Notes: generated from the letters alone by a model not told the origin. Positions 5,178 to 37,600 are shown, counted from the stretch's first letter. The stretch: 64,000 bases of DNA from Octopus sinensis (GCF_006345805.1 NW_021831731.1:299162-363161), one strand, 5' to 3'. Program-made: numbers and translations.

Positions 5178-7327
5178 GTTTGTGTTTGTGTGCGTGTATG
5201 TATGTGTGTTTTTGAGTATATGTATATGCATATATAAGCTGTATCTTCTATATGAATGTGTCACTTTCTCTCTCTAGCTGTTTTATATCCTATCCATAAC
5301 TGTCATTCGTTTACATTGAATTGTTCATTTATATTGGATTCAAGTCCCTTGACAGAAAATGTGAGCAAAAATGAGATTGGGAGAGAGAGAGAGAGAGAGG
5401 TGAGAAAGAGAGAGAGATTAAGAGAGAGATGTAAAATGATCGAGGGGTAAGTGAGGTGAGATAGAGACCATAAGACTGAGAATGCCAAAAATAAAATAAA
5501 AACAAAGAGATTATGAAGGTATATAAAGAGGTAGATAGATGGGTAGGGTGTGTACGTATATGGGTGTTTGCCAGAAAATAAGATAGAGAAAGGAATAACA
5601 AAAGGAGAGAGGGGCTTACAGAACAAAGCGAAGAAAAGCCAAAACAAAGTAGTAATAGTAATGAAGCAGTAAGAACAGAGAGAACAAGGGTCCTATATAG
5701 ATTCGTGAAGTGTGTGCACGTAAGAATATGAAGAGAGAGAGAGAGAAGGGAAAAGAGAGAGAGGGGGAAAGAGAGAGAGAGAGAGAGAGGTGGGAGGGGG
5801 AGTTAAAAGGGAAAAGGATAAAAAGAAAGAGAAAAAGAGAGAAAACGAAATTGGGAAAGAAAATAGAATGATGCAGACATCTAAAGAGACACTATTTCTA
5901 CGATAATGGAATTATTCTCTAGACGGAGGAACGGAACGATAAGTAGCTAAAATTTAATTTCACCGCATATATGTGACGAATGATAAAAGAAAGCCTAGCA
6001 GACGATTTCAACTAAGAAAAATGGCGGTGGAATGTAAGAAATAATAAAAGGAACTAGTGGAAGAAATAGAGATGGATAAAAGAAGAAAAAAAGACGAAAG
6101 TGATAGAGAGAGAGAGAGAGAGAGAAGAAATAAAACAGACAAAAATATAAAACATACTAAACTTTTAAAGGTTACCCAAAATTATCCTTAAAATAGGTTA
6201 AATCGAATAGAATTATAGGAGAAAGCAAATGCTCTGTGAGGGGATAGATAAAGAAATAAAGAAATAAAGAAAACACGCACGGTAGCGAACTTAAAAATTA
6301 TATTAATAAAATGCTAAGGAAAATTTTAGAAACAGCGATTGAGAGAAAGAAAATGAAATTATTATAAGAGAAAATAAAGAAAACAGGTGGTTTCACAAGA
6401 ATCACACAACTAGATGAGGACAATGTTTCCAATAACAATGACGATAATGCTAATTTGTACGACTGCCGGAAGAAAAATGAAAAGAAAAATGTCGACTTCA
6501 GCTGCTACAACAGTTAAAATGTTACTTTTTGATAACGCAACTGATCTAGCAACATTATACGATTAGTTAAAGAAACTAAAATTCAAAACAAACTATTTAA
6601 CTGCAAATAAAATGAAAACAAACAAGAAAAACGTTACATAACAAAATTAAACATACGGACATAGATTATAAAAAAAAAAATACGCAGACGTAATATCACC
6701 TTCTGGTTTAAATTAACTTACGAAGGAGAAATAAAAAAATGTAAACAACAACGAGAAAGATGGTGATGATGATGATGATTATGGTGACGACGATGACGAC
6801 GACTGTGACGACAACAACAACAACAACAATGATGGCAACCGCGACGAAGATAATTACACTGAAGGTGATAAAAATAAACCAGTCTTCATTAGCCACAGCT
6901 CTAAGAATGTGTATACCTGAAAAATGTTTCGGATTTACAATTTAGAAAAGTGTCAAAATTTGCTTCTTCGTTTTACTAGTTTGAACTCTTCCAATTATTT
7001 CTTGGTGCTAGTTAGCAACAATCACAGTATTACACATCAGATTTATGGAATTCACTGTCAATAACTATTAGGAAACCTCATATTATTTAAAAAATAAATA
7101 AATTGAAAACATTTCGTTTAAAAGATACAGAATAAAGCTACTCTTAATACGCTCTGCATTCTCAGTATCTTATATAATCATTATAACAGCATCACCATTG
7201 GCTGTTCGTCGGTAGTCGACGGTGACTGCTTATACTTAAACGAAGACATTATTTATCTTACTGGCATCTGATTAAAAAAAAAAAAGAGAAGCTGCATTAG
7301 TTGTGTAGGATTTAAAAAAAAAATGTT

Positions 7328-26650: not shown

Positions 26651-28592
26651 AAGTAGGAGAAAATGTCAGTTAAAATAGTTCAAGGGTTCAATCAAGGTTG
26701 GAGAAGGAAGGTAAAGGAAAATTAAAGTGAGGGAATGTATTCCGTATGACTGGTGTTTATATTTGATTTATTTTATGAATGAGTGCTCGTATGTATGAGT
26801 GTGTAAAATTGCCTTAATGTGTGTGTGTGTGTGTCTGTGAATGCGTGAATGTGTGTGTAGAAGGCAGAGAGAAAGAATTAACGGTCAGGAGGTGAAAAGA
26901 CTGTGTCTGTGTGTTCGAATGTGTCAACTTAAGAGGGAGAGGGCTGTAAGAGCCCACAATAGTTTGTGGAAGGGGCCTTGTCGATTACAACGACCCGGTG
27001 TTTTACTGGTACTTAATTTATCGACAGCGATAGGATGAAAGGCAAGGTTTATAACGGTGGAATTTGAAATGACAAAACGCTGCGAAGAATTTTGCCAGCT
27101 TGTCGAATAATAAGGCAGTCTGACCCACCCGGAGGCAGTGTCTGATTCAAAGTAGTAGTGACATTCAAAAAGATTATTTCAGAAATTAAAAAAAAATCCA
27201 TCCAAAATAAACAAGACTACAAGGTAATCAATTTCATGTTGCAAGAAAGAAATATGAGAGTTCAACGTTCTTTCAAGGGAGATAACAGCAAAATATCTGG
27301 TTTTTTTTGTGTATATTTGTTTTATTGAGAACGTATTTACGTGTGTGTGCGCGTGCATGTGTATGTCTGCATGTGTGTGTTTGTAGGTATGTACGTAAAT
27401 ATGTCTCAAATTACGTGTGCTTACTTGTGTTAGGTTCGTGTGTGTGCGTGTGTGTGTGTGTATGTGTGTGTGTGTGTGTGTTTATGTGTTGGTAAATATC
27501 TACTACTGTGTAGTTGTAATGAATGGAACATAATGCCATGGGAGTGTGTGCGAATTTAATGGGTGGATGGACAGTAGGGAAGATAAGTTATTTGTACGTG
27601 TACGTTTATTCGTGGTAAGAAACAAAGATAAGAAATGCATAGGGAAACACTTATTAGTCTTTGAGAAGGCAGTGTTAACAAAGGAAAGCGAGGCAGTTTG
27701 TTCATTCAGATTGAGTCCACGTTATTCGTAGCACCAACTGAAAGCGGTCTAAAATGACACTAAAGATAGAGAAATTTAAGCAATTTTGTCCTTTAGAACT
27801 GAAATGGTAAGCTACAGGTCGAAACTATTCGGTGCTGCATAGTCTGATGTTTTAAAAATGCTCTCAAAAGATGTCTGCCAATTTTCGACTGTTTTTCCAA
27901 CACACCACTTAACTTAACAGTTCTGCTATTGAGCTCAAATTGTTGCGTAAACGATGCAGACTGTACCTGGTAGGATTATCATTGGGATTGTATATAACGA
28001 TGTGAGCCCCGTTATAGTTTTTATGGCTTTGTTCATATTATTAATCATACCGTGAGCTCAGTTGATGTTTATAGTATTTTCACCTTCATGGCCAACATCT
28101 TTGATATTTAAACTTCAAGAGCCTTGTACTTTCACAATTTCCAATGGCTTTCGACAAAGTTTGGTAAGAAGAAATCCAGATGTGTATCAGAGTATGTACA
28201 TTAATTACATCCTGACAGTTTACTTGGCTCATTTTGTCACTCTGTACTGGTACGTCTCATTGGAGTTTGTAGAAGATGATCAGAGTGAAAGGCGATCCTA
28301 GTTGTTGTGTACCCCGATTCTCTCGAGGTTGTGGTTTGAATGCTTATTTTACTAAACATTGAACCTGATTAAAATTATTGTTTAACGTTATATTTTTGCC
28401 CTTGACGTTCTGAGTTCAAAGCTAACTACAGAGATGATCTAATGGACTCCGTTCTCCACTCCATAATTTGCTACCTCGTGTTTATTTTGTAAATCATTAT
28501 TATTTCTGTATTGTCACATTCATAATGGAGCAACCTGTCAACCTTGTTTTACGAAAAAGCCTTAAGAAAGATGTGTACTTGTGACAGAGACG

Positions 28593-28632
<40 letters not shown>

Positions 28633-28847
28633 TAGAGAGAGAGAGAGAAAGAGAGAGAGAGAGGGAGAGAGAGCGGGAGAGAGAGGGAGGGAAAGAGAGA
28701 GAGAAAGAGATGAGAAGATAGAGAAGGAGAGACAGACTGATGAGTGAGAGATGCAGATAACTAAAAAAATTGTGAATCAGAAGAGTAGAGAGAGAGAGAG
28801 AGAGTACAAGTGAGTGAGTGAAAGAGACAGAGAGTACAAGTGAGTGA

Positions 28848-28895
<48 letters not shown>

Positions 28896-29235
28896 TGGAA
28901 AGAAAAAGACAGTGACAGTGGCAGTGAGTGAAAAAGAGAGAGAAGGAGATAGAGAGAGTGAAAGAGAGGAGATCTGAGCAATGTCGTCATCATAATAATC
29001 CCCTTTAAGAATTAAAGTGGATACCACACAAGGCTAAAAATAAATTTCTATTGCAGAAACGGCTTTAAAAGGTTTAAGAAGGTGATGGGACATGACCTCC
29101 CTATTGTTGATAAAAAGTTACCAGTGCACCTTTCAATACTTAATTAACAGTTATACACGAATTATTTACTGACAAGACAGTTGATTGATATACCAGGTAA
29201 TAAAGGTTTTACGAAATTGGTGCACGCTAAAGAGC

Positions 29236-29372
29236 TATAACCACCAGCATTGATTTTGGGTAGAGAATGTATAGTGAAAGATGCCCAACAAAATAATAAT
29301 TATCGCTGTACAGTCATATCCAAGTAATCTGGTTACTATATACATATATACATACAAACATACATACATACA

Positions 29373-29427
<55 letters not shown>

Positions 29428-29507
29428 TATATATATGAATGTATGTATGTATGTTTTTATGTATATATATGTGTATATATATATATATGAATGTATGTCG
29501 GTATGTT

Positions 29508-29557
<50 letters not shown>

Positions 29558-29689
29558 TGTATGTCTGTATGTTTGTATGTACATATGTATATAGTAACCA
29601 GATTACTTGGATATGACTGTAAAGCGATAATTATTATTTTGTTGGGCATCTTTCACTATACATTCTCTACCCAAAATCAATGTTGGTGG

Positions 29690-29694
<5 letters not shown>
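29236..29694. repeat. Inverted repeat, ~105-bp unique arms (2 mismatches) extending into mirrored microsatellite
   Basis: 29236-29340 is the reverse complement of 29590-29694. Confidence 0.9.
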
Positions 29695-29732
<38 letters not shown>

Positions 29733-30069
29733 ATATATGTATATATACACACAAATTAGGGAAAAATACCGTTTATCAATTCAATAATTTAAAATTAAAT
29801 TATACCATCTAGAAAATTACATATTATAGAAAGATTAAAACATATAACGATGATTAAGTAATGTGCAAAATAATAAATAAAACGTATATATTTGGTAGGA
29901 TAACGACACGTGTTTCGTGGCTATATTTAAGAAATGATAATAGTAAAAATAATAGTAGTAGTAGTAAAATCACTTTAATATAAATATAGCCACTCTTCAG
30001 GTTAAAGATAACAACAATAATAAAATAATTAATTAGATGAATTAATAAATGTACGTAAATAATCTTGTA

Positions 30070-30151
<82 letters not shown>

Positions 30152-30411
30152 AATATGGAAAGAAGAATTTTTCTCAAAGAGTTAAGTTTGAGTAAAAAAC
30201 CTCTGTAGAAAGTCGAAAGGCACTAACTGTTGGGAAGAGATTTCACAAAATGTGTGTAGGCTTTGTTTTTATAGAATTGCAAGTGCTTTCAGATCTTAAC
30301 ATTTTTAAGCACGTGTTATTGTATATAGTGGAAGTTGTTTTCAGTAAAAATTTATTATTGACTATTTCCGGTTTAGTTTCTTACTCAGAAATCTTATGAA
30401 ATATTCTTCTT

Positions 30412-31142
30412 TTGCCTTCTACGCATGAGGAAAAAGAAACTTTGGAATCTTTACAAAAAGATCACTCAATAATTATTAAAGAAGCGGACAAAGAAGGGGT
30501 AATTGTCATAATGGACAAACTCCATTATAGAGGAATGGTCCTTGAACACCTAAATGACCAACACTTCTGCAAAAAATTAGAAAATAATCTAGATAGGTAT
30601 ACAATAAATAAGATTAGTAAATTTACAAACACATATAAAAATGAACTTACAAAAAAAAGAGGTAGATTACCTTACTAAGTTTGAAGTAAAAACCAGTAAC
30701 TTCTATGGTCTTCAGAGAACCAAGAAATCTAAAGAAATCTAATTATGTTTGAAGGACATCCAGACTTCCCAGATAAAGGTTCTCAGACCATCTGATCTTA
30801 AATTAAGACCAATTGTAGTAAGACTATCATCAAGCACACAAAGACTAAGCATCTTGCTTGACACAATTCTAAAACCCTTATGTAAATTGGTCCCTAGTTT
30901 TATTAGGGATTATATGGATTTCCTAAACCACATTCCAAAAAGAGTGAACAAAGAAACCATATTAGTCAGCTTTGTTGTAGTCTGCCTCTACACCAATATC
31001 CCCCATAACTTAGGACGAGAAGCAATAGAGTTCTGGATGCACAAACATCCACAAGGAATCCAAGAAAGATTCTCTAAGGAGTTCATACGTGAAGGGCTAC
31101 AGCTAGTACTAGAAAATAACTACTTCTTCTTTGACAACCAAT
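30412..31142 (+). mobile_element. Penelope-like element RT, 5' part (decayed)
   Basis: IIIKEADK, LRPIV, SFIRDYMDFL, LYTNIP and LVLENNYFFFDNQ motifs, with stops and frameshifts. Confidence 0.88.
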
Positions 31143-31180
31143 TTCATTTCATTTCATTTCATTTGGGTTTGAGTCCATGC

Positions 31181-34170
31181 TCAGGCCAAGTCGAAGACTC
31201 CACCCTCAGAGTCTGGTGTGGTTGCCAGGTTGTATTCTCTGCTTAATTTTGACATGTGTAGGAGCGAGTTTGAGTCAGTTTGTGCTCGTTGTGTATATCC
31301 TGGGAGATTGGGTTCATCTCTAATGGTGCTTAAGTATCTATCCAGTTGCAATTTGAATGATTCCACACTGCATCCTGATAGATTTCTGACATGTACCGGA
31401 ATGGAGTTGAACAGTTGGGCTCCTCGAACCAACAGACTTGATTCTCGCAGGGTTTTTGCTGCCTGGCCAGCCTTTTTGTTGATTGGTGGCAGCTGGCAGC
31501 GTCTTCCGTGGCGCAGTGAGTGGTAGGTTTGATACCAAAGTTTGGCACCTTCTGCTCTATCATTTTCCAAATGTATATAATTCGGTATCGCTCAAATCTT
31601 CTTTCTATTGAGTACATCCTCAAGGTTTTGAGTCTTTGCCAATAGTCCAGGTCCCTCGTTTCTGAGAAGTATGAGGTAAAATTTCTTTGGAGCGATTCTA
31701 TCTTAGATAGTTGGCCCTTTGTTGTTGGTGACCACAACTGAGAACAGTAGTCAATCCTCGGAAGTATCATACTGTTCCAGAGGGTTTTCATTGTTGAGGT
31801 ATCTCTTGATTTGAAGGTGGGCAAGATCCACCCGCTGTACTTTCTTGCAGTAAGACAGACTGATTCAAGGTGTTCTCTGAATTTTAGGTTGGTTCCCATG
31901 TGGATGCCTAAATCTTTCACATACTGTTTTTCCATTATTTGTTGTCCTGATGGGTTTCTGTAGTTTGTTGTATTTTTCAGATCTTGATCTGTTCCGTAGC
32001 GAATTAGTTCAAACTTCTTATCATTGAACAACATGTTGTTTGTTTCCTGCCATTTATATATGGTGATCAGGTCCTTTTGTAAGGCCTCTGTATCCACCTC
32101 GTCTTTGATTTGTCTCATGACCCTGGTGTCATCAGCAAAGGATGAGACGTTGCTGGTTGTATCTTCATCTATGTCAGAGATGAGGATGAGAAACAGGATT
32201 GGGCCAAGTACTGTACCCTGAGGAACACTGCTGGTCACAGGTGATGGTGTTGAATGGGTTCCATTCACAGTGACTGTTTGAGTTCTATTTGTAAGGAACT
32301 CATGTATCCATGTACCAACTTTTCCTCCTACTCCTAGCTTTCGAAGTTTGTGACCCAGGATGCCATGATCTACCTTGTCAAATGCCTTGGCAAAGTCGAG
32401 GTAGATAACATCTGTGTTGTATCCATTCTCTAGATTTTCTAGGATTTGGTCATGGTGTGCCAGTAGTTGGGAAAGGCATGATCTACCTAACCTGAATCCA
32501 TGCTGGTTGCAATTCATCAGATTGTTGGATTCCAGGAACTCAACCAGTTTTCCACGAACTATTCTTTCGAAGACCTTGATAATGTGTGATGTCAGTGAGA
32601 TTGGTCGGTAGTTCTTTGGTTTTGATTTGCTGTCCCCTTTATGTATTGGAGTTATGTGTGCTTCTTTATATGTATTTGGTATTTTGCCATTCTCCATAGA
32701 TTCCCTCCATATCATGTAAAGGGGTTTCGACAATTGTACCTTGCAGTTTTTAAGTATCATGGCATTGAAACCGTCAGGCCCCGCAGCCGAGTGCATGGAG
32801 AGCTTGTCTATGGCTCTTGCTATGTCTTCTGGGTTGAAATCAATGTCGGATAGGGTAGGTTTAGTATGGTCGATATCCTTGAAGAATTTTCCTGGGTCAT
32901 GGATCTTCATGGTTTTAGATGGCTCACTGAAGACACTTTCATACTGTTGACCCAACATTTCTGCCATTTCAATAGGGTTATTCACTACATCCCCATTTTG
33001 TCTCTGGAGAGGTCCTATTGTTGACTTGGTGTTCGAGTATTTCTTTGCAAAACTGTAGAAACATTTTGGATTTTTCTTGATGTTTTCTATGGCTCTCTTT
33101 TCTGCATTGTTACGTTCTCCATCATAGTGTTGTTTTAGATTGTCTTCTAATCTGTATATTTGGTCAAGGACTTTCTGTAATTCATGTTTTGATGTCAGCT
33201 TAGATGTTTTGTTTCTTAGTCTTGACCTTTTGCGCATCAGTAGCTTTTGCTTCCGTGGTACAGGTTTTTTTGTGGACTTGGTTTTCTTTAGAGGAACATT
33301 TTTTTCACATATTTCTTCGATCTTGTTTAAGAATTTCTTGTGTTTATCTGGCCCAGTAAGGTAGAGATCCCAGTCAATGATTTGTAACTGGTTGTTAATA
33401 GTTTCCCAATTTGCCTGGTGATAATCATACCTGCATAGCTTTGGCATGTCCTTTTGTTTAAGAGTTGTGGCATTGGGCTCATTACCAATGTGTAAATGCA
33501 TTTCAATAATATTGTGGTCTGAAAGGATTGTTGGGGTTGAGTGAAGGTCAAATAGCGTGACCTCGTTGTTAGTGAAAACCAAGTCGATCGTATTATTATT
33601 TCTTGTTGCTTCTGTCATCATTTGTTTGAGGTATAATTTCTCTGTGCCTTCCAACAGTTTGGCTGCCTGTATTTGTTCAGCTTTTGTCCCCAGTTTTAGT
33701 ATGTGTCCATGTGGCCAGATGATGTTAGGGAAGTTGAAGTCACCAAGGAGGATAATGTCTGGCATTGGACTTGCCATGTTTCCCAGAATTTGTTGGAGCT
33801 TCGTCAGTGGCTCAGTGAAGGATAATGTTGGGCTGTTTGGCGGTCTGTACATTATTGTTACAACTGTATTAAGTTGGATGATTTTTATGCACAGCAGGTT
33901 GCAGTAAGCATTTGATTCATTGACAAGTTCTATGCATGCATAGGTATCATGGATATACATGATAACGCCCCCATGGGATCTGCCTTGTCTATCACATCTG
34001 AAGATGTTGAATCTATTGATTGTGATTTCGCTGTTGCGGATGTTTTCGTTGAGATGACTTTCAGTAATTCCAATTATTTTGGAGTTGTTTTCTCTTGCTA
34101 ATTCTTCCAAGAAAGGACTTTACACTGTTTTGTTTTCGGATAAAGACCCTGGATATTTGCTGTTATTATG
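31181..34170 (-). pseudogene. LINE ORF2: apurinic-type endonuclease + reverse transcriptase, with two 1-bp frameshifts (~34115, ~31529)
   Basis: EN motifs TANIQGL, GITESHL, YRPP, LGDFN, IDLVF, SDH. RT motifs YRPISLTS, YLDFAKAFDKVDH, VPQGTVLGPILF, FADD, DLG, YCSQLWSP. The C-terminus continues in the 31181-31570 frame, and the N-terminal TANIQGL lies in a different frame from the 926-aa ORF, whose listed start is TTG. Confidence 0.92.
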
Positions 34171-35302
34171 CTTGTTGTACCGGATACATCTGCCCTATTG
34201 TTGGCAAGACTGTTGTAGTTGCTGGGACTGTGCTGACTGGATATTCGGTCTGCTGGGTTGTCTGTATTTGTTGTATGTGCCCTGTAAGTCCAGGTGTCAG
34301 CCTTTGTATCAATGTTGCCTGGTTTTGCTGAGTCGTCTGTATGGAGTACAGCTGTTGTTGTAGTTGGTAGATTATGCCTAAAAAATTGCTTTCATTCATT
34401 ACTATATCGAATTTCTGCGAGTTTGGGTTTGTTACAGCTGATGTATGCAATTGAGTAGCATGATTTTCATTCACTGTTGAGCCATGACCTGGGTTCCGCA
34501 TTTTTGGGAAATAGTTTTCATACCCTGTTGAGCTTGGTCCTGGTGGTGTGGGTTCAGTAGTTTTTAAGCGAATTGTACCCTTCCGGTGCATAAATTTGCA
34601 ATTCTCACCAAAACATTCTTTTTTTCTCAGCGAATTGCGGCACATCTTTGGGTGAAGGAGTTCACATTCTCGGCCATTTTGGCATCCTTTTTTTCGATCA
34701 GTACCGAAGTTGATATATGGTCTGCATGGTTTGGGGTGACTGTACATGTACCCTGTACCTGAAAGACCATGTTTGCACTTGTTGCGCCTGTAATGGATAC
34801 ATACTGGCCTTTCTTCATTTGAGCGTTTGCTCTGGATCTGTTTCTTTTCGTGGGAAGTTTGGTCTTTTTCTGCAGGATCTCCTGTTTCTTGTTTTGTAGG
34901 TGTTTGCATGTCATTGTCTTCATTCTTGTCATTTACAAGAGGCACTTGGATGGCCTGTGTGTGGCAGGATTTATTTGCCATGTCAGTTTCGCCAATCAAT
35001 GTCTGTTTAGAACGGCTTGTCTGTGGTAGGGTCCTAGGTTCATTCGTTATTGTGGCCCTTGGTGAACAATAACTGCATAGCCAGTGTAGGCCTAGAATAT
35101 CTGGAATGGTGTGGTTATTTATCTTTTTTAAGTAGCACGCTTCGTGTATTCCTTGTCCACAGATGAAGCATGCCAAAGCTGGTTTTTGGCCAAATGTAAT
35201 GCAGTACTGTTTGTCACACATTTTGCAAGTCTCCGGGAGGAAGTTTTCAATCCTTGTTATAATCCAGTTGGTGAGGTTTGGTTTTGTGAGCTCAACTTGG
35301 AC
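34166..35302 (-). CDS. LINE ORF1 (5'-truncated): PHD finger, three CCCH zinc fingers, Q/T-rich tail
   Basis: C4HC3 pattern CKMC..CFIC..H..C..WLCSYC at 35066-35227 and CCCH units at 34586-34801. The first 17 codons of the track ORF (GTG start at 35353) are antisense Penelope sequence outside the TSD. Confidence 0.8.
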   Translation of the reverse strand, partial: VQVELTKPNLTNWIITRIENFLPETCKMCDKQYCITFGQKPALACFICGQGIHEACYLKKINNHTIPDILGLHWLCSYCSPRATITNEPRTLPQTSRSKQTLIGETDMANKSCHTQAIQVPLVNDKNEDNDMQTPTKQETGDPAEKDQTSHEKKQIQSKRSNEERPVCIHYRRNKCKHGLSGTGYMYSHPKPCRPYINFGTDRKKGCQNGRECELLHPKMCRNSLRKKECFGENCKFMHRKGTIRLKTTEPTPPGPSSTGYENYFPKMRNPGHGSTVNENHATQLHTSAVTNPNSQKFDIVMNESNFLGIIYQLQQQLYSIQTTQQNQATLIQRLTPGLTGHIQQIQTTQQTEYPVSTVPATTTVLPTIGQMYPVQQA

Positions 35303-35910
35303 ACCAATACTACCTACAAATACGTGGCACTGCGATGGGTACCAGAGTAGCACCTAGACTTGCCACACTAGTAATGGATTTTTTGGAAGAAAAAAATCTA
35401 CTGCTTGTCTCAAATTTCTTTTGGCCAAAACTTCCACTCATACCTAGTGGAAAACTAAATGGACACACACCAATATTTAGACTTTAGATCTTGCCATCCT
35501 CCCCATACAAAAAGGAACATACCCTTTAATATGGCAAGACAAATATGTACAGTAGTTTCAGAGACAAATAGAAGAAAAAGACAACTTGCAGAACTTAACT
35601 TGTGCCTCAAAAAACAAAAATACCCCACCAAACTAATAGACCAAGCGATAACTGAAGCTAAAAATCTCTACACTAAGAAGAAAAAAAAACACTCACACTG
35701 AGGATAAACGAAAAAATGAACATAAAAATATCCCATTTGTTATTACTCACAATCCTAAGAACCACGATATTCTACAAACAGCCAAACGCCTTCTACCAAT
35801 TCTACACCAGTCCTCATGTCTCCGACAAATAATCAAAGATCAACATATAACCAACAGCCGAAGGCAACCACCAAATCTTAAGAAACTTCTAACCAATGCA
35901 AGATTTGGAT
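35303..35910 (+). mobile_element. Penelope-like element RT, 3' part (continuation after the LINE insertion, internally deleted)
   Basis: YYLQIRGTAMGTRVAPRLATLVMDFLEE, then YLDFRSCHPPHTKRNIPFNMARQIC, IPFVITHNP and RRQPPNLKKLLTNARF. Confidence 0.88.
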
Positions 35911-36533: not shown

Positions 36534-36760
36534 TATATATATATATATATATATGTACATGAGTGTGTGTAATATATATACACTCACATATACATTATCC
36601 TCTTGGATGTACACGCAGGAGAAAGAGATCTTAAATATGTACTGGCCTTAATTGTTCGGCGTTAATGATACTCCCCATGATGCAAAAATTTTCTTGCTAT
36701 AAGCGGATCTCCAGACGACAAAAGTTTGGACATGATCATGGAAAAAGCCTAATATTACTA

Positions 36761-37036
<276 letters not shown>

Positions 37037-37189
37037 ATACATATATAAAAATCGCCACTTTTCAAAAGAAAGCCATTACTTCAATTTTGCAAAGAGTATT
37101 CGTGAGTATGCGTGTGAATCTTCAGGCCTGCTTGATTTTGCAAGTCTTCTTTCATATATTACATACCAAAAACCTGTTGACATTATCTT

Positions 37190-37600
37190 AGTCTTTGTGC
37201 TCTTTCAGATCCGCTCAGCTTTGTCACAGAATTGACATGAAATGAAGACTGTTGCACAATCATCATGTTGAAATGCGTCTAAGACTGAGATCACTTCCTG
37301 TTGGCGATGGAGTTTGATCTTTCAAGATGGATTATTCGTTTCTCCGTGTTTCGATTGCTTAACAAGCATCATAGATCAATCCTTTAGAAACCAATAGATT
37401 TTTCGACAATTGCTCTCAGTTTTAAACACTCCCTCTAAGAGCAATAAAGAGTATTTGATGAAATCCCTAAAACGATTTTAGGCTGTATCACGTTGCAACT
37501 CCTCATAAATCAACTGCTTCGATAAACTGTTATCTTCCATCTTAGTAATGGTGCCCACTGGATCTGATTGCGTATGTGAAATATCTCCGTACTGAATGAC
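37190..37600 (-). mobile_element. Decayed RTE/BovB 3' fragment
   Basis: KMEDNSLSKQLIYEEL (compare RMEDxRLPKQLLYGEL), followed by RFRDFIK. Confidence 0.6.

Follow-up and report, generated by a model that had tools for sequence, protein, structure and literature searches.

A conserved in-phase slippery heptamer where ORF1 and ORF2 overlap in an octopus LINE and its relatives suggests -1 ribosomal frameshifting into the endonuclease-reverse transcriptase frame

A 64,000-nt stretch of the Octopus sinensis genome (GCF_006345805.1 NW_021831731.1:299162-363161; the whole stretch is called the window below) carries on its minus strand a copy of a non-long-terminal-repeat (non-LTR) retrotransposon, or long interspersed nuclear element (LINE). 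A canonical -1 slippery heptamer, U_UUU_UUA, lies in its first open reading frame (ORF1) at the point where the -1 frame leading into ORF2 opens. The active relatives of this octopus LINE probably express ORF2, with its endonuclease (EN) and reverse transcriptase (RT), only as a transframe fusion with ORF1 made by a -1 ribosomal frameshift. A sequence-only reading of the window had proposed such a Gag-Pol-like ORF1-ORF2 fusion, and this proposal was supported by a comparison of families and by the continuous -1 frame of an Octopus vulgaris copy (L001).

The minus strand reads AAT TTT TTA GGC (N-F-L-G) in the ORF1 frame, which places T_TTT_TTA at 34385-34379 in the X_XXY_YYZ phase that the sequence-only reading had assigned to it. 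As that reading also had it, the -1 frame is closed slightly upstream by a TGA (34394-34392) and is then open, with no Met, into endonuclease motif I; the open stretch comprises 97 codons (34391-34101) and reads KQFFRHNLPTTTT...SIITANIQGLYPKTKQCKV. ORF1 ends with TAA at 34168-34166, giving an overlap with the -1 frame of ~217 nt, close to the ~210 nt first estimated, and motif I begins 11 nt past the first base of this stop. Within the overlap, the -1 frame has no stops compared to five in the +1 frame. The octopus copies read TAA-TAA-CAG-CAA-AAT... at the ORF1 stop, with no AUG that could serve as a start codon for reinitiation. The features of the junction, all on the minus strand, are:

34392..34394 (-), TGA closing the -1 frame two codons 5' of the heptamer, from frame reading
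34378..34385 (-), slippery heptamer T_TTT_TTA (34385-34379) and the invariant G (34378), phase read in ORF1
34166..34385 (-), dual-coding overlap, with the ORF1 helix and tail in the zero frame and an AUG-less S/T/N/P-rich linker in the -1 frame
34143..34160 (-), endonuclease motif I ANIQGL (within SIITANIQGL), read in the -1 frame

The closest relative of the ORF1 product is the O. vulgaris protein P0001, annotated as 'C3H1-type domain-containing' (93% identity). At the O. vulgaris locus L001, ORF1 spans 5812-7221 and overlaps a -1 frame that opens at 6999, two codons ahead of the heptamer, and continues for 1014 codons. This frame reads KQFFRHNLPTTTT...IITANIQGLYPKTKQCKVPFLEELATENN... unbroken, with one base more at the equivalent of 34116/34117. 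Its first Met is codon 144, inside the endonuclease domain and past the catalytic motifs; L001 has a downstream ORF in the -1 frame that overlaps ORF1 and lacks a start codon of its own. Neither of the compared copies is fully intact, since L001 carries a 51-nt in-frame tandem duplication in ORF1 (17 codons, L001:6806-6856) and an 11-nt deletion at ~10003 that truncates the ORF2 C-terminus, and the window copy is decayed.

Relatives were gathered via ORF1 searches, a metagenome scan, an ORF2 search, and contig look-ups. Nine families with homologous ORF1 and a readable junction were obtained, namely, octopus (the window copy W, L001, L007, and L008), L002/L005, L003/L004, L009/L010, L006, L013, L014, L015, and L073, which diverge from octopus to 18-42% identity in ORF1 and 38-50% in ORF2. 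ORF2 lies in the -1 frame in 9/9 families, with an overlap starting from the same ORF1 site, and this site reads N-T/TTT/TTA/G in phase throughout, with TTG in L006. The sequence-only reading had set the test beforehand that relatives should keep the heptamer, its phase, and the open -1 frame, and all nine families comply.

The site is preceded by S (AGT/TCT), N (AAT), D (GAT), or P (CCT) and followed by G, E, or D; the last base of the preceding codon is T and the first base of the following codon is G in every family. Selection on the RNA itself is argued for by these invariant flanking bases beside variable residues. TTT is the sole codon identical across L001, L002, L004, L009, and L006 in a 36-codon alignment around the site, a stretch in which other conserved Q, L, and I residues vary synonymously. 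With pooled ORF1 codon usage, the probability of T-TTT-TTR given x-F-L is 0.039 per family, which amounts for the heptamer to ~5e-12 over the eight further families, assuming independence. The wobble T, TTT, TTR, and the first G are conserved beyond the protein requirement in 9/9 families.

Decayed copies (L003, L011, and L012) were noted among the loci, and L062, an ORF1-positive locus in a metagenome-assembled genome (MAG), was left out as too decayed to read. In the wider ORF1 alignment, A2, divergence was too great for a search by pattern. ORF1-profile scans of bacterial/archaeal genome contigs and of viral contigs returned no relatives, and an ORF2-profile scan of viral contigs returned no match.

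The reading-frame signal changes at the same site. Inside ORF1 upstream of the heptamer, the -1 frame contains 255 stops in 2986 codons, pooled over the nine families. Between the heptamer and the ORF1 stop there are none in 668 codons, compared to 57 expected from the upstream -1 stop density (Poisson, 1.7e-25). The nearest upstream -1 stop lies 0, 2, 2, 3, 19, 21, 35, 37, and 48 codons before the heptamer, a spread approximately that of an unconstrained frame, with the first four values belonging to L073, L001, L013, and L006, respectively. In L073, TAG abuts the heptamer directly and the -1 frame is then open for 1109 codons. As a control, the +1 frame has 3-7 stops in the same stretch from heptamer to ORF1 stop. 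Synonymous resampling that kept the ORF1 protein gave a joint P = 5.8e-5 for the open -1 frame in five families, and this test is conservative because the ORF1 protein itself may have adapted to the overlap. The stop counts and controls therefore indicate that it is exactly from the slippery site onward that the -1 frame is protected as coding sequence.

In ORF1, the N-terminal region is followed by a PHD-like finger, then by three CCCH fingers, and finally by a C-terminal segment that is conserved, SFLGILQQIQ..L..IE..QQ.Q..LIQ. The PHD matches are below the Pfam cut-off in all members (16-22 bits versus 24-30) and those of the CCCH fingers are also sub-threshold; the cysteine/histidine spacing of the fingers is conserved. 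The parts located in the window are:

35066-35227 (-), PHD-like finger, Pfam 16.4 bits versus a cut-off of 24
34586-34801 (-), three CCCH-type fingers, sub-threshold Pfam matches
34298-34384 (-), C-terminal helix, predicted helix 336-364 of P0001

The AlphaFold model of ORF1, built from six sequences, was poor, with a mean predicted local distance difference test score (pLDDT) of 33. Its sole segment with some confidence was helix 336-364 of P0001 (pLDDT 50-67), for which alone the model was used. The predicted helix begins at the F-L encoded by the heptamer, so a shifted ribosome would swap the helix for the linker and EN-RT. An ORF1-ORF2 fusion is plausibly viable, since PHD, EN, and RT share a single protein in some relatives (P0084, P0102, and P0106).

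According to the proposed mechanism, ribosomes from the ORF1 AUG would arrive at U_UUU_UUA with the P site occupied by tRNA-Phe and the A site by tRNA-Leu. Of these, a minority would slip back by one base and go on in the -1 frame, so that ...N-F-L would be followed by R-H-N-L-P-T-T-T-T..., and would traverse a ~70-codon unconserved linker before entering the endonuclease domain. Unshifted ribosomes would produce the ORF1 protein (ORF1p) with its C-terminal helix, and the shifted product would join the N-terminal, PHD-like, and CCCH-finger parts of ORF1 to EN-RT, without the helix. That slippage itself occurs, and that the fusion protein is the functional form, is what the pattern of sequence conservation suggests. 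The efficiency of slippage is probably low, since the octopus family has no downstream stimulator.

Like junctions with different slip sites or stimulators were found in L006, L016, and L019, which agrees with the prediction of a frameshift mechanism. In L006, U_UUU_UUG is followed by a ~14-bp hairpin that starts 2-7 nt downstream (-27.4 kcal/mol, z = -4.56, 0/200 shuffles). L016, a tenth, related family (Bacteroidota MAG contig), encodes an ORF1 with homologous CCCH fingers and has a 217-nt -1 overlap (L016:1339-1555). Its in-phase A_AAA_AAC, followed by G, is located past the zinc fingers and ahead of the C-terminal helix, seven codons downstream of where the -1 frame opens. L019 (L019:459-535, Bathyarchaeota MAG contig) has an ORF1 of the GDSL-esterase type (Pfam 41.4 bits versus a cut-off of 32.9), with an in-phase U_UUU_UUA in a 34-nt -1 overlap; past this heptamer, the ORF1 stop comes after 3 nt, and a spacer of 8 nt leads to a 12-bp hairpin (z = -2.45). 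Judged by its sequence, L019 resembles a textbook cassette for -1 frameshifting, here with another type of ORF1.

Several observations weigh against the frameshift interpretation, beginning with RNA structure. In the octopus family, the 120 nt past the heptamer fold with z = -0.68, which is not significant (47/200 shuffles fold as well), in line with the absence of a strong hairpin in the sequence-only reading. The one weak stem that this reading had pointed out is present 27 nt past the heptamer and forms part of the minimum-free-energy fold of a region that folds no better than shuffles; it is not conserved in other families:

34337..34351 (-), weak CTGTA/TACAG stem (34351-34347 with 34341-34337)

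Folding of the 50-130 nt after the heptamer was negative in octopus, L002, L004, L013, L014, L015, and L073, and z ranged from -2.2 to +0.55 over octopus and six other families. L009 has only a distant long-range hairpin, with its start ~25 nt downstream (z = -2.2), and no Rfam match was obtained at the octopus junction, nor in L006 or L019. A stimulatory structure 5-9 nt downstream is absent from the octopus family and occurs only in L006 and the more distant L019; the structure tests consisted of local folding, with pseudoknots and trans-acting stimulators outside the search. Rich in A and C, the 100 nt after the octopus heptamer contain only 18 G. Furthermore, F-L is an invariant residue pair of ORF1, so part of the nucleotide conservation reflects a protein-level constraint, and the families represented by metagenomic contigs appear to be independent by their divergence only.

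The remaining adverse points concern the start of ORF2 and bear on the alternative that survives best, although we regard it as unlikely: ORF2 would be translated separately, by termination-reinitiation or from an unconventional, possibly non-AUG, start at the ORF1 stop or the endonuclease, and TTTTTTA would be kept for another reason. A Met stands directly before ANIQG in L013 and L015, and L015 alone has a start codon at or near the ORF1 stop, an AUG 2 nt past it (TAA-TC-ATG), which is the classic reinitiation layout. An AUG is also present in L004, 12 codons ahead of the endonuclease motif, and in many distant relatives ORF2 starts with a Met at the motif itself, M(x)N[IV][QR]G. The claim of an AUG-less -1 frame stands for octopus, L002, L009, and L073, which have no AUG between heptamer and motif as separate translation from an AUG would need, and does not extend to L013, L015, and L004. 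The ORF1 TAA lies 11 nt before the motif I Asn codon in four families (L001:7222, L004:899, L009:1350, and L015:1390), a spacing that could suit termination-coupled initiation too, and human L1 ORF2 translation is described as AUG-independent (PMC5009743).

A simpler reason for the fixed stop position, however, is that in the other frame the bases of the TAA belong to conserved I/L-I codons of the endonuclease (A-TA-AT-A, C-TA-AT-A, and T-TA-AT-C), so ORF1 is unable to extend past it. L002 has an earlier ORF1 stop, yet TAA TAA is retained at the old position. Under reinitiation, the ORF2 frame is expected to be unconstrained upstream of the ORF1 stop, and the -1 frame that is stop-free for 39-106 codons upstream of it in 9/9 families is left unexplained, as are the conserved wobble and flanking bases and the hairpins of L006 and L019. 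Both routes, frameshifting and reinitiation, may be used in some families.

A further alternative moves the event from the ribosome to the synthesis of the nucleic acid. Slippage of RNA polymerase II (Pol II) during transcription, or of the reverse transcriptase, on the T6 tract would let some RNAs gain one U and so align ORF2 with ORF1. A conserved T6 tract is needed here too, a one-base insertion is in effect a -1 shift, and the F-L residues dictate the tract's phase anyway. Six bases are, however, short for efficient slippage, and all four octopus copies examined (W, L001, L007, and L008) have T6 and none has T7. Transcriptional slippage is made very unlikely by the A_AAA_AAC of L016 and by the hairpins of L006 and L019 at frameshift-type spacing. 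That the heptamer and open frame are functionless chance features of a decayed pseudogene copy is scarcely credible and is contradicted by the comparison of families. In its favour, the window copy is a dead one, truncated 5' and with two frameshifting deletions, and further in-phase XXXYYYZ heptamers occur in ORF1. These heptamers, however, are not conserved and sit where the -1 frame is closed, and the junction signal is found in nine families that diverge widely, in most of which ORF1 is open and the ORF2 frame is long and open.

U_UUU_UUA is the HIV-1 gag-pol heptamer. The octopus junction has the same heptamer and phase as retroviral/LTR gag-pol of the HIV-1 type and likewise a -1 enzyme ORF without a start codon, with a similar expected output of much structural protein and little fusion protein. 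In contrast to gag-pol, the host is a non-LTR retrotransposon of the apurinic/apyrimidinic endonuclease (APE) type with no protease to free the enzyme, the long overlap (~180-310 nt) codes for a conserved helix of ORF1, and most of the LINE families have no stem-loop at 5-9 nt, pseudoknots not having been searched for. Among the animal LTR elements surveyed, pol is in the -1 frame in 28/51, many with classical heptamers, and the non-LTR entries in the same recoding review are only HeT-A gag frameshifting, an unresolved TART junction, and AUG-independent L1 initiation (PMC5009743). The frameshift idea is not new in kind, since Dictyostelium TRE5-A and TRE3-A are stated to need a -1 frameshift for ORF2 in a review of Pol III-targeting elements (PMC5911963). 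These are amoebozoan, tRNA-gene-targeting elements of another lineage; the octopus case rests on deep metazoan conservation.

For L1 and SART1, termination-reinitiation, AUG-independent, or UAAUG-coupled modes of ORF2 translation have been put forward. The octopus LINE resembles them in its bicistronic RNA and in an ORF1 stop near the functional start of ORF2 (11 nt, four families). Unlike in L1 and SART1, the open ORF2 frame reaches back past the ORF1 stop by those 39-106 codons, as far as a canonical slippery site, and several families lack an AUG.

With Jockey-superfamily (CR1/L2-like) LINEs, the octopus element shares APE and RT, a putative PHD-like ORF1 finger (sub-threshold in Pfam), and a 3' microsatellite tail; by these features the element is tentatively CR1/L2-like. 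Jockey-superfamily ORF1 types include PHD as Type III and esterase as Type IV (PMC4120745), and L019 is of the GDSL-esterase type, as in Type IV. Unlike the described types, the octopus ORF1 adds three CCCH fingers and a C-terminal helix. Frameshifting or ORF overlap has 0 occurrences in the Jockey-superfamily ORF1 survey (PMC4120745), and a study of octopus LINEs covers only RTE and Dong elements (PMC9115989). In the papers searched, no description was found of a slippery-heptamer frameshift joining metazoan LINE ORF1 and ORF2. New here are a canonical slip site deeply conserved in many metazoan LINE families, its position at an ORF1 domain boundary, and the fact that most of these families apparently have no cis stimulator.

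The translation of ORF2 from a bicistronic LINE RNA is a long-standing question to which L1 and SART1 alone have given a partial answer; ORF1 and ORF2 are generally pictured as separate proteins. That nine or more LINE families keep a canonical slippery site suggests a fusion strategy like that of retroviruses across a large group of animal LINEs. The junction is a compact cassette of ~300 nt and directly testable, and that of the octopus family is a natural system for what sets frameshift efficiency without RNA structure.

A wider generalization is doubtful in our estimation, namely, that an entire, deeply diverged marine-invertebrate CR1/L2-like LINE group makes EN-RT solely as a fusion of ORF2 to a helix-less ORF1, via a structure-independent U_UUU_UUA_G frameshift, or via a shift set by a trans-factor. 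A structure-free fusion group, if true, would be the first Gag-Pol-like expression strategy in APE-type LINEs. As a candidate trans-factor, the element's own CCCH-finger ORF1 protein might bind the downstream A/C-rich tract. If a shift were stimulated in trans by bound ORF1p, ORF2 dosage would be self-regulating. Protein-stimulated frameshifting is known from a few RNA viruses, of which such a shift would be the cellular-element counterpart.

Annotation pipelines will mis-call ORF2 starts in these elements, and the gene callers applied to the relatives' contigs placed the ORF2 start at the first downstream ATG. In O. vulgaris, the proteins P0013 ('fission process 1') and P0070 ('PARP14-like') contain stretches 99% and 91% identical to the LINE ORF2, respectively, and are, judging by these matches, likely annotation chimeras with transposon fragments.

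Other junction types were observed among the MAG-binned LINE contigs. In L022 (L022:1229-1233) and L036 (L036:459-463), ORF1 and ORF2 are in one frame with a single stop codon between them, which points to readthrough or reinitiation; +1 overlaps occur in L023 and L032, and -1 overlaps without a canonical heptamer in L021 and L025. The occurrence of single-stop, +1, and -1 junctions indicates that junction design is labile in the group. Altogether, 57 contigs in bacterial/archaeal MAGs (L016-L072; among others, Sedimenticola, Thiodiazotropha, Bacteroidota, and Nitrososphaeraceae) encode animal-type LINE EN-RT and are almost certainly host or eukaryote contamination of the MAG bins.

The window copy was identified as a two-ORF non-LTR retrotransposon by a 395-codon open frame in the ORF1 frame (34169-35353, minus strand, ending ...PVQQA-TAA) and a 929-codon open frame (31333-34119, minus strand) with Exo_endo_phos and RVT_1 domains. 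The ORF2 domain scores, 8.5e-13 for Exo_endo_phos_2 and 7e-30 for RVT_1, both exceed the Pfam cut-offs, and the N-terminal AP-endonuclease and the reverse transcriptase of an APE-type non-LTR element are both present. From 35306 to 31141, the copy aligns to L001 6033-10240 with 97.5% identity over 4.2 kb and 4 indels. Its 5' end is missing, and 1-nt deletions relative to L001 are located at 34116/34117 and 31530/31531. The copy is a dead, 5'-truncated fossil with two frameshifting deletions, a state that the sequence-only reading had overlooked, and a self-comparison of the window revealed no second copy of the element. Its parts are:

31141..35306 (-), two-ORF non-LTR (LINE) copy, 5'-truncated and decayed, from alignment to L001 and the Exo_endo_phos and RVT_1 domains
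34169..35306 (-), ORF1 remnant with the start missing, stop TAA at 34166-34168
34116..34117 (-), site of the 1-nt deletion that splits motif I from the remaining ORF2, from pairwise alignment with L001, which is continuous there
31333..34119 (-), ORF2 body in the third frame, with the endonuclease at 33514-34101 and the reverse transcriptase at 31978-32640
31184..31591 (-), C-terminal part of ORF2 in another frame, owing to the second 1-nt deletion at 31530/31531
31141..31164 (-), 3' microsatellite tail (AAATG)n, a tail type identical to that ending the L001 copy

The -1 frame of the window copy terminates at a TAG (34098-34100), and the ORF2 body is in the third frame because of the deletion at 34116/34117. 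The Exo_endo_phos Pfam match on the third-frame ORF2 begins only at profile position 25, which assigns the N-terminal part of the endonuclease domain to the -1 frame. A placement of ORF2 in the +1 frame of ORF1, taken from the raw ORF list, was rejected as an artefact of the 1-nt deletion. The frame at 31184..31591 carries a conserved C-terminal motif, ...FKLQLDRYLSTIRDEP..., that is also found in relatives.

The LINE interrupts an older, plus-strand element (30412-31140 and 35307-35701) within its reverse-transcriptase ORF; this element is decayed and was assigned by eye to a Penelope-like type. The flanks joined across the LINE restore ...ENNYFFFDNQ/YYLQIRGTAMGTRVAP..., with the slash marking the insertion point. 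No clear target-site duplication was observed for the LINE insertion, only microhomology of CCA at the junction of the truncated 5' end. The nested transposons are flanked at 28562-30177 and 36665-37191 by long tracts of microsatellite and low-complexity sequence (TC/TCTC, TATA/TACA, and CATT-type), which produce spurious long ORFs in the mechanical ORF list.

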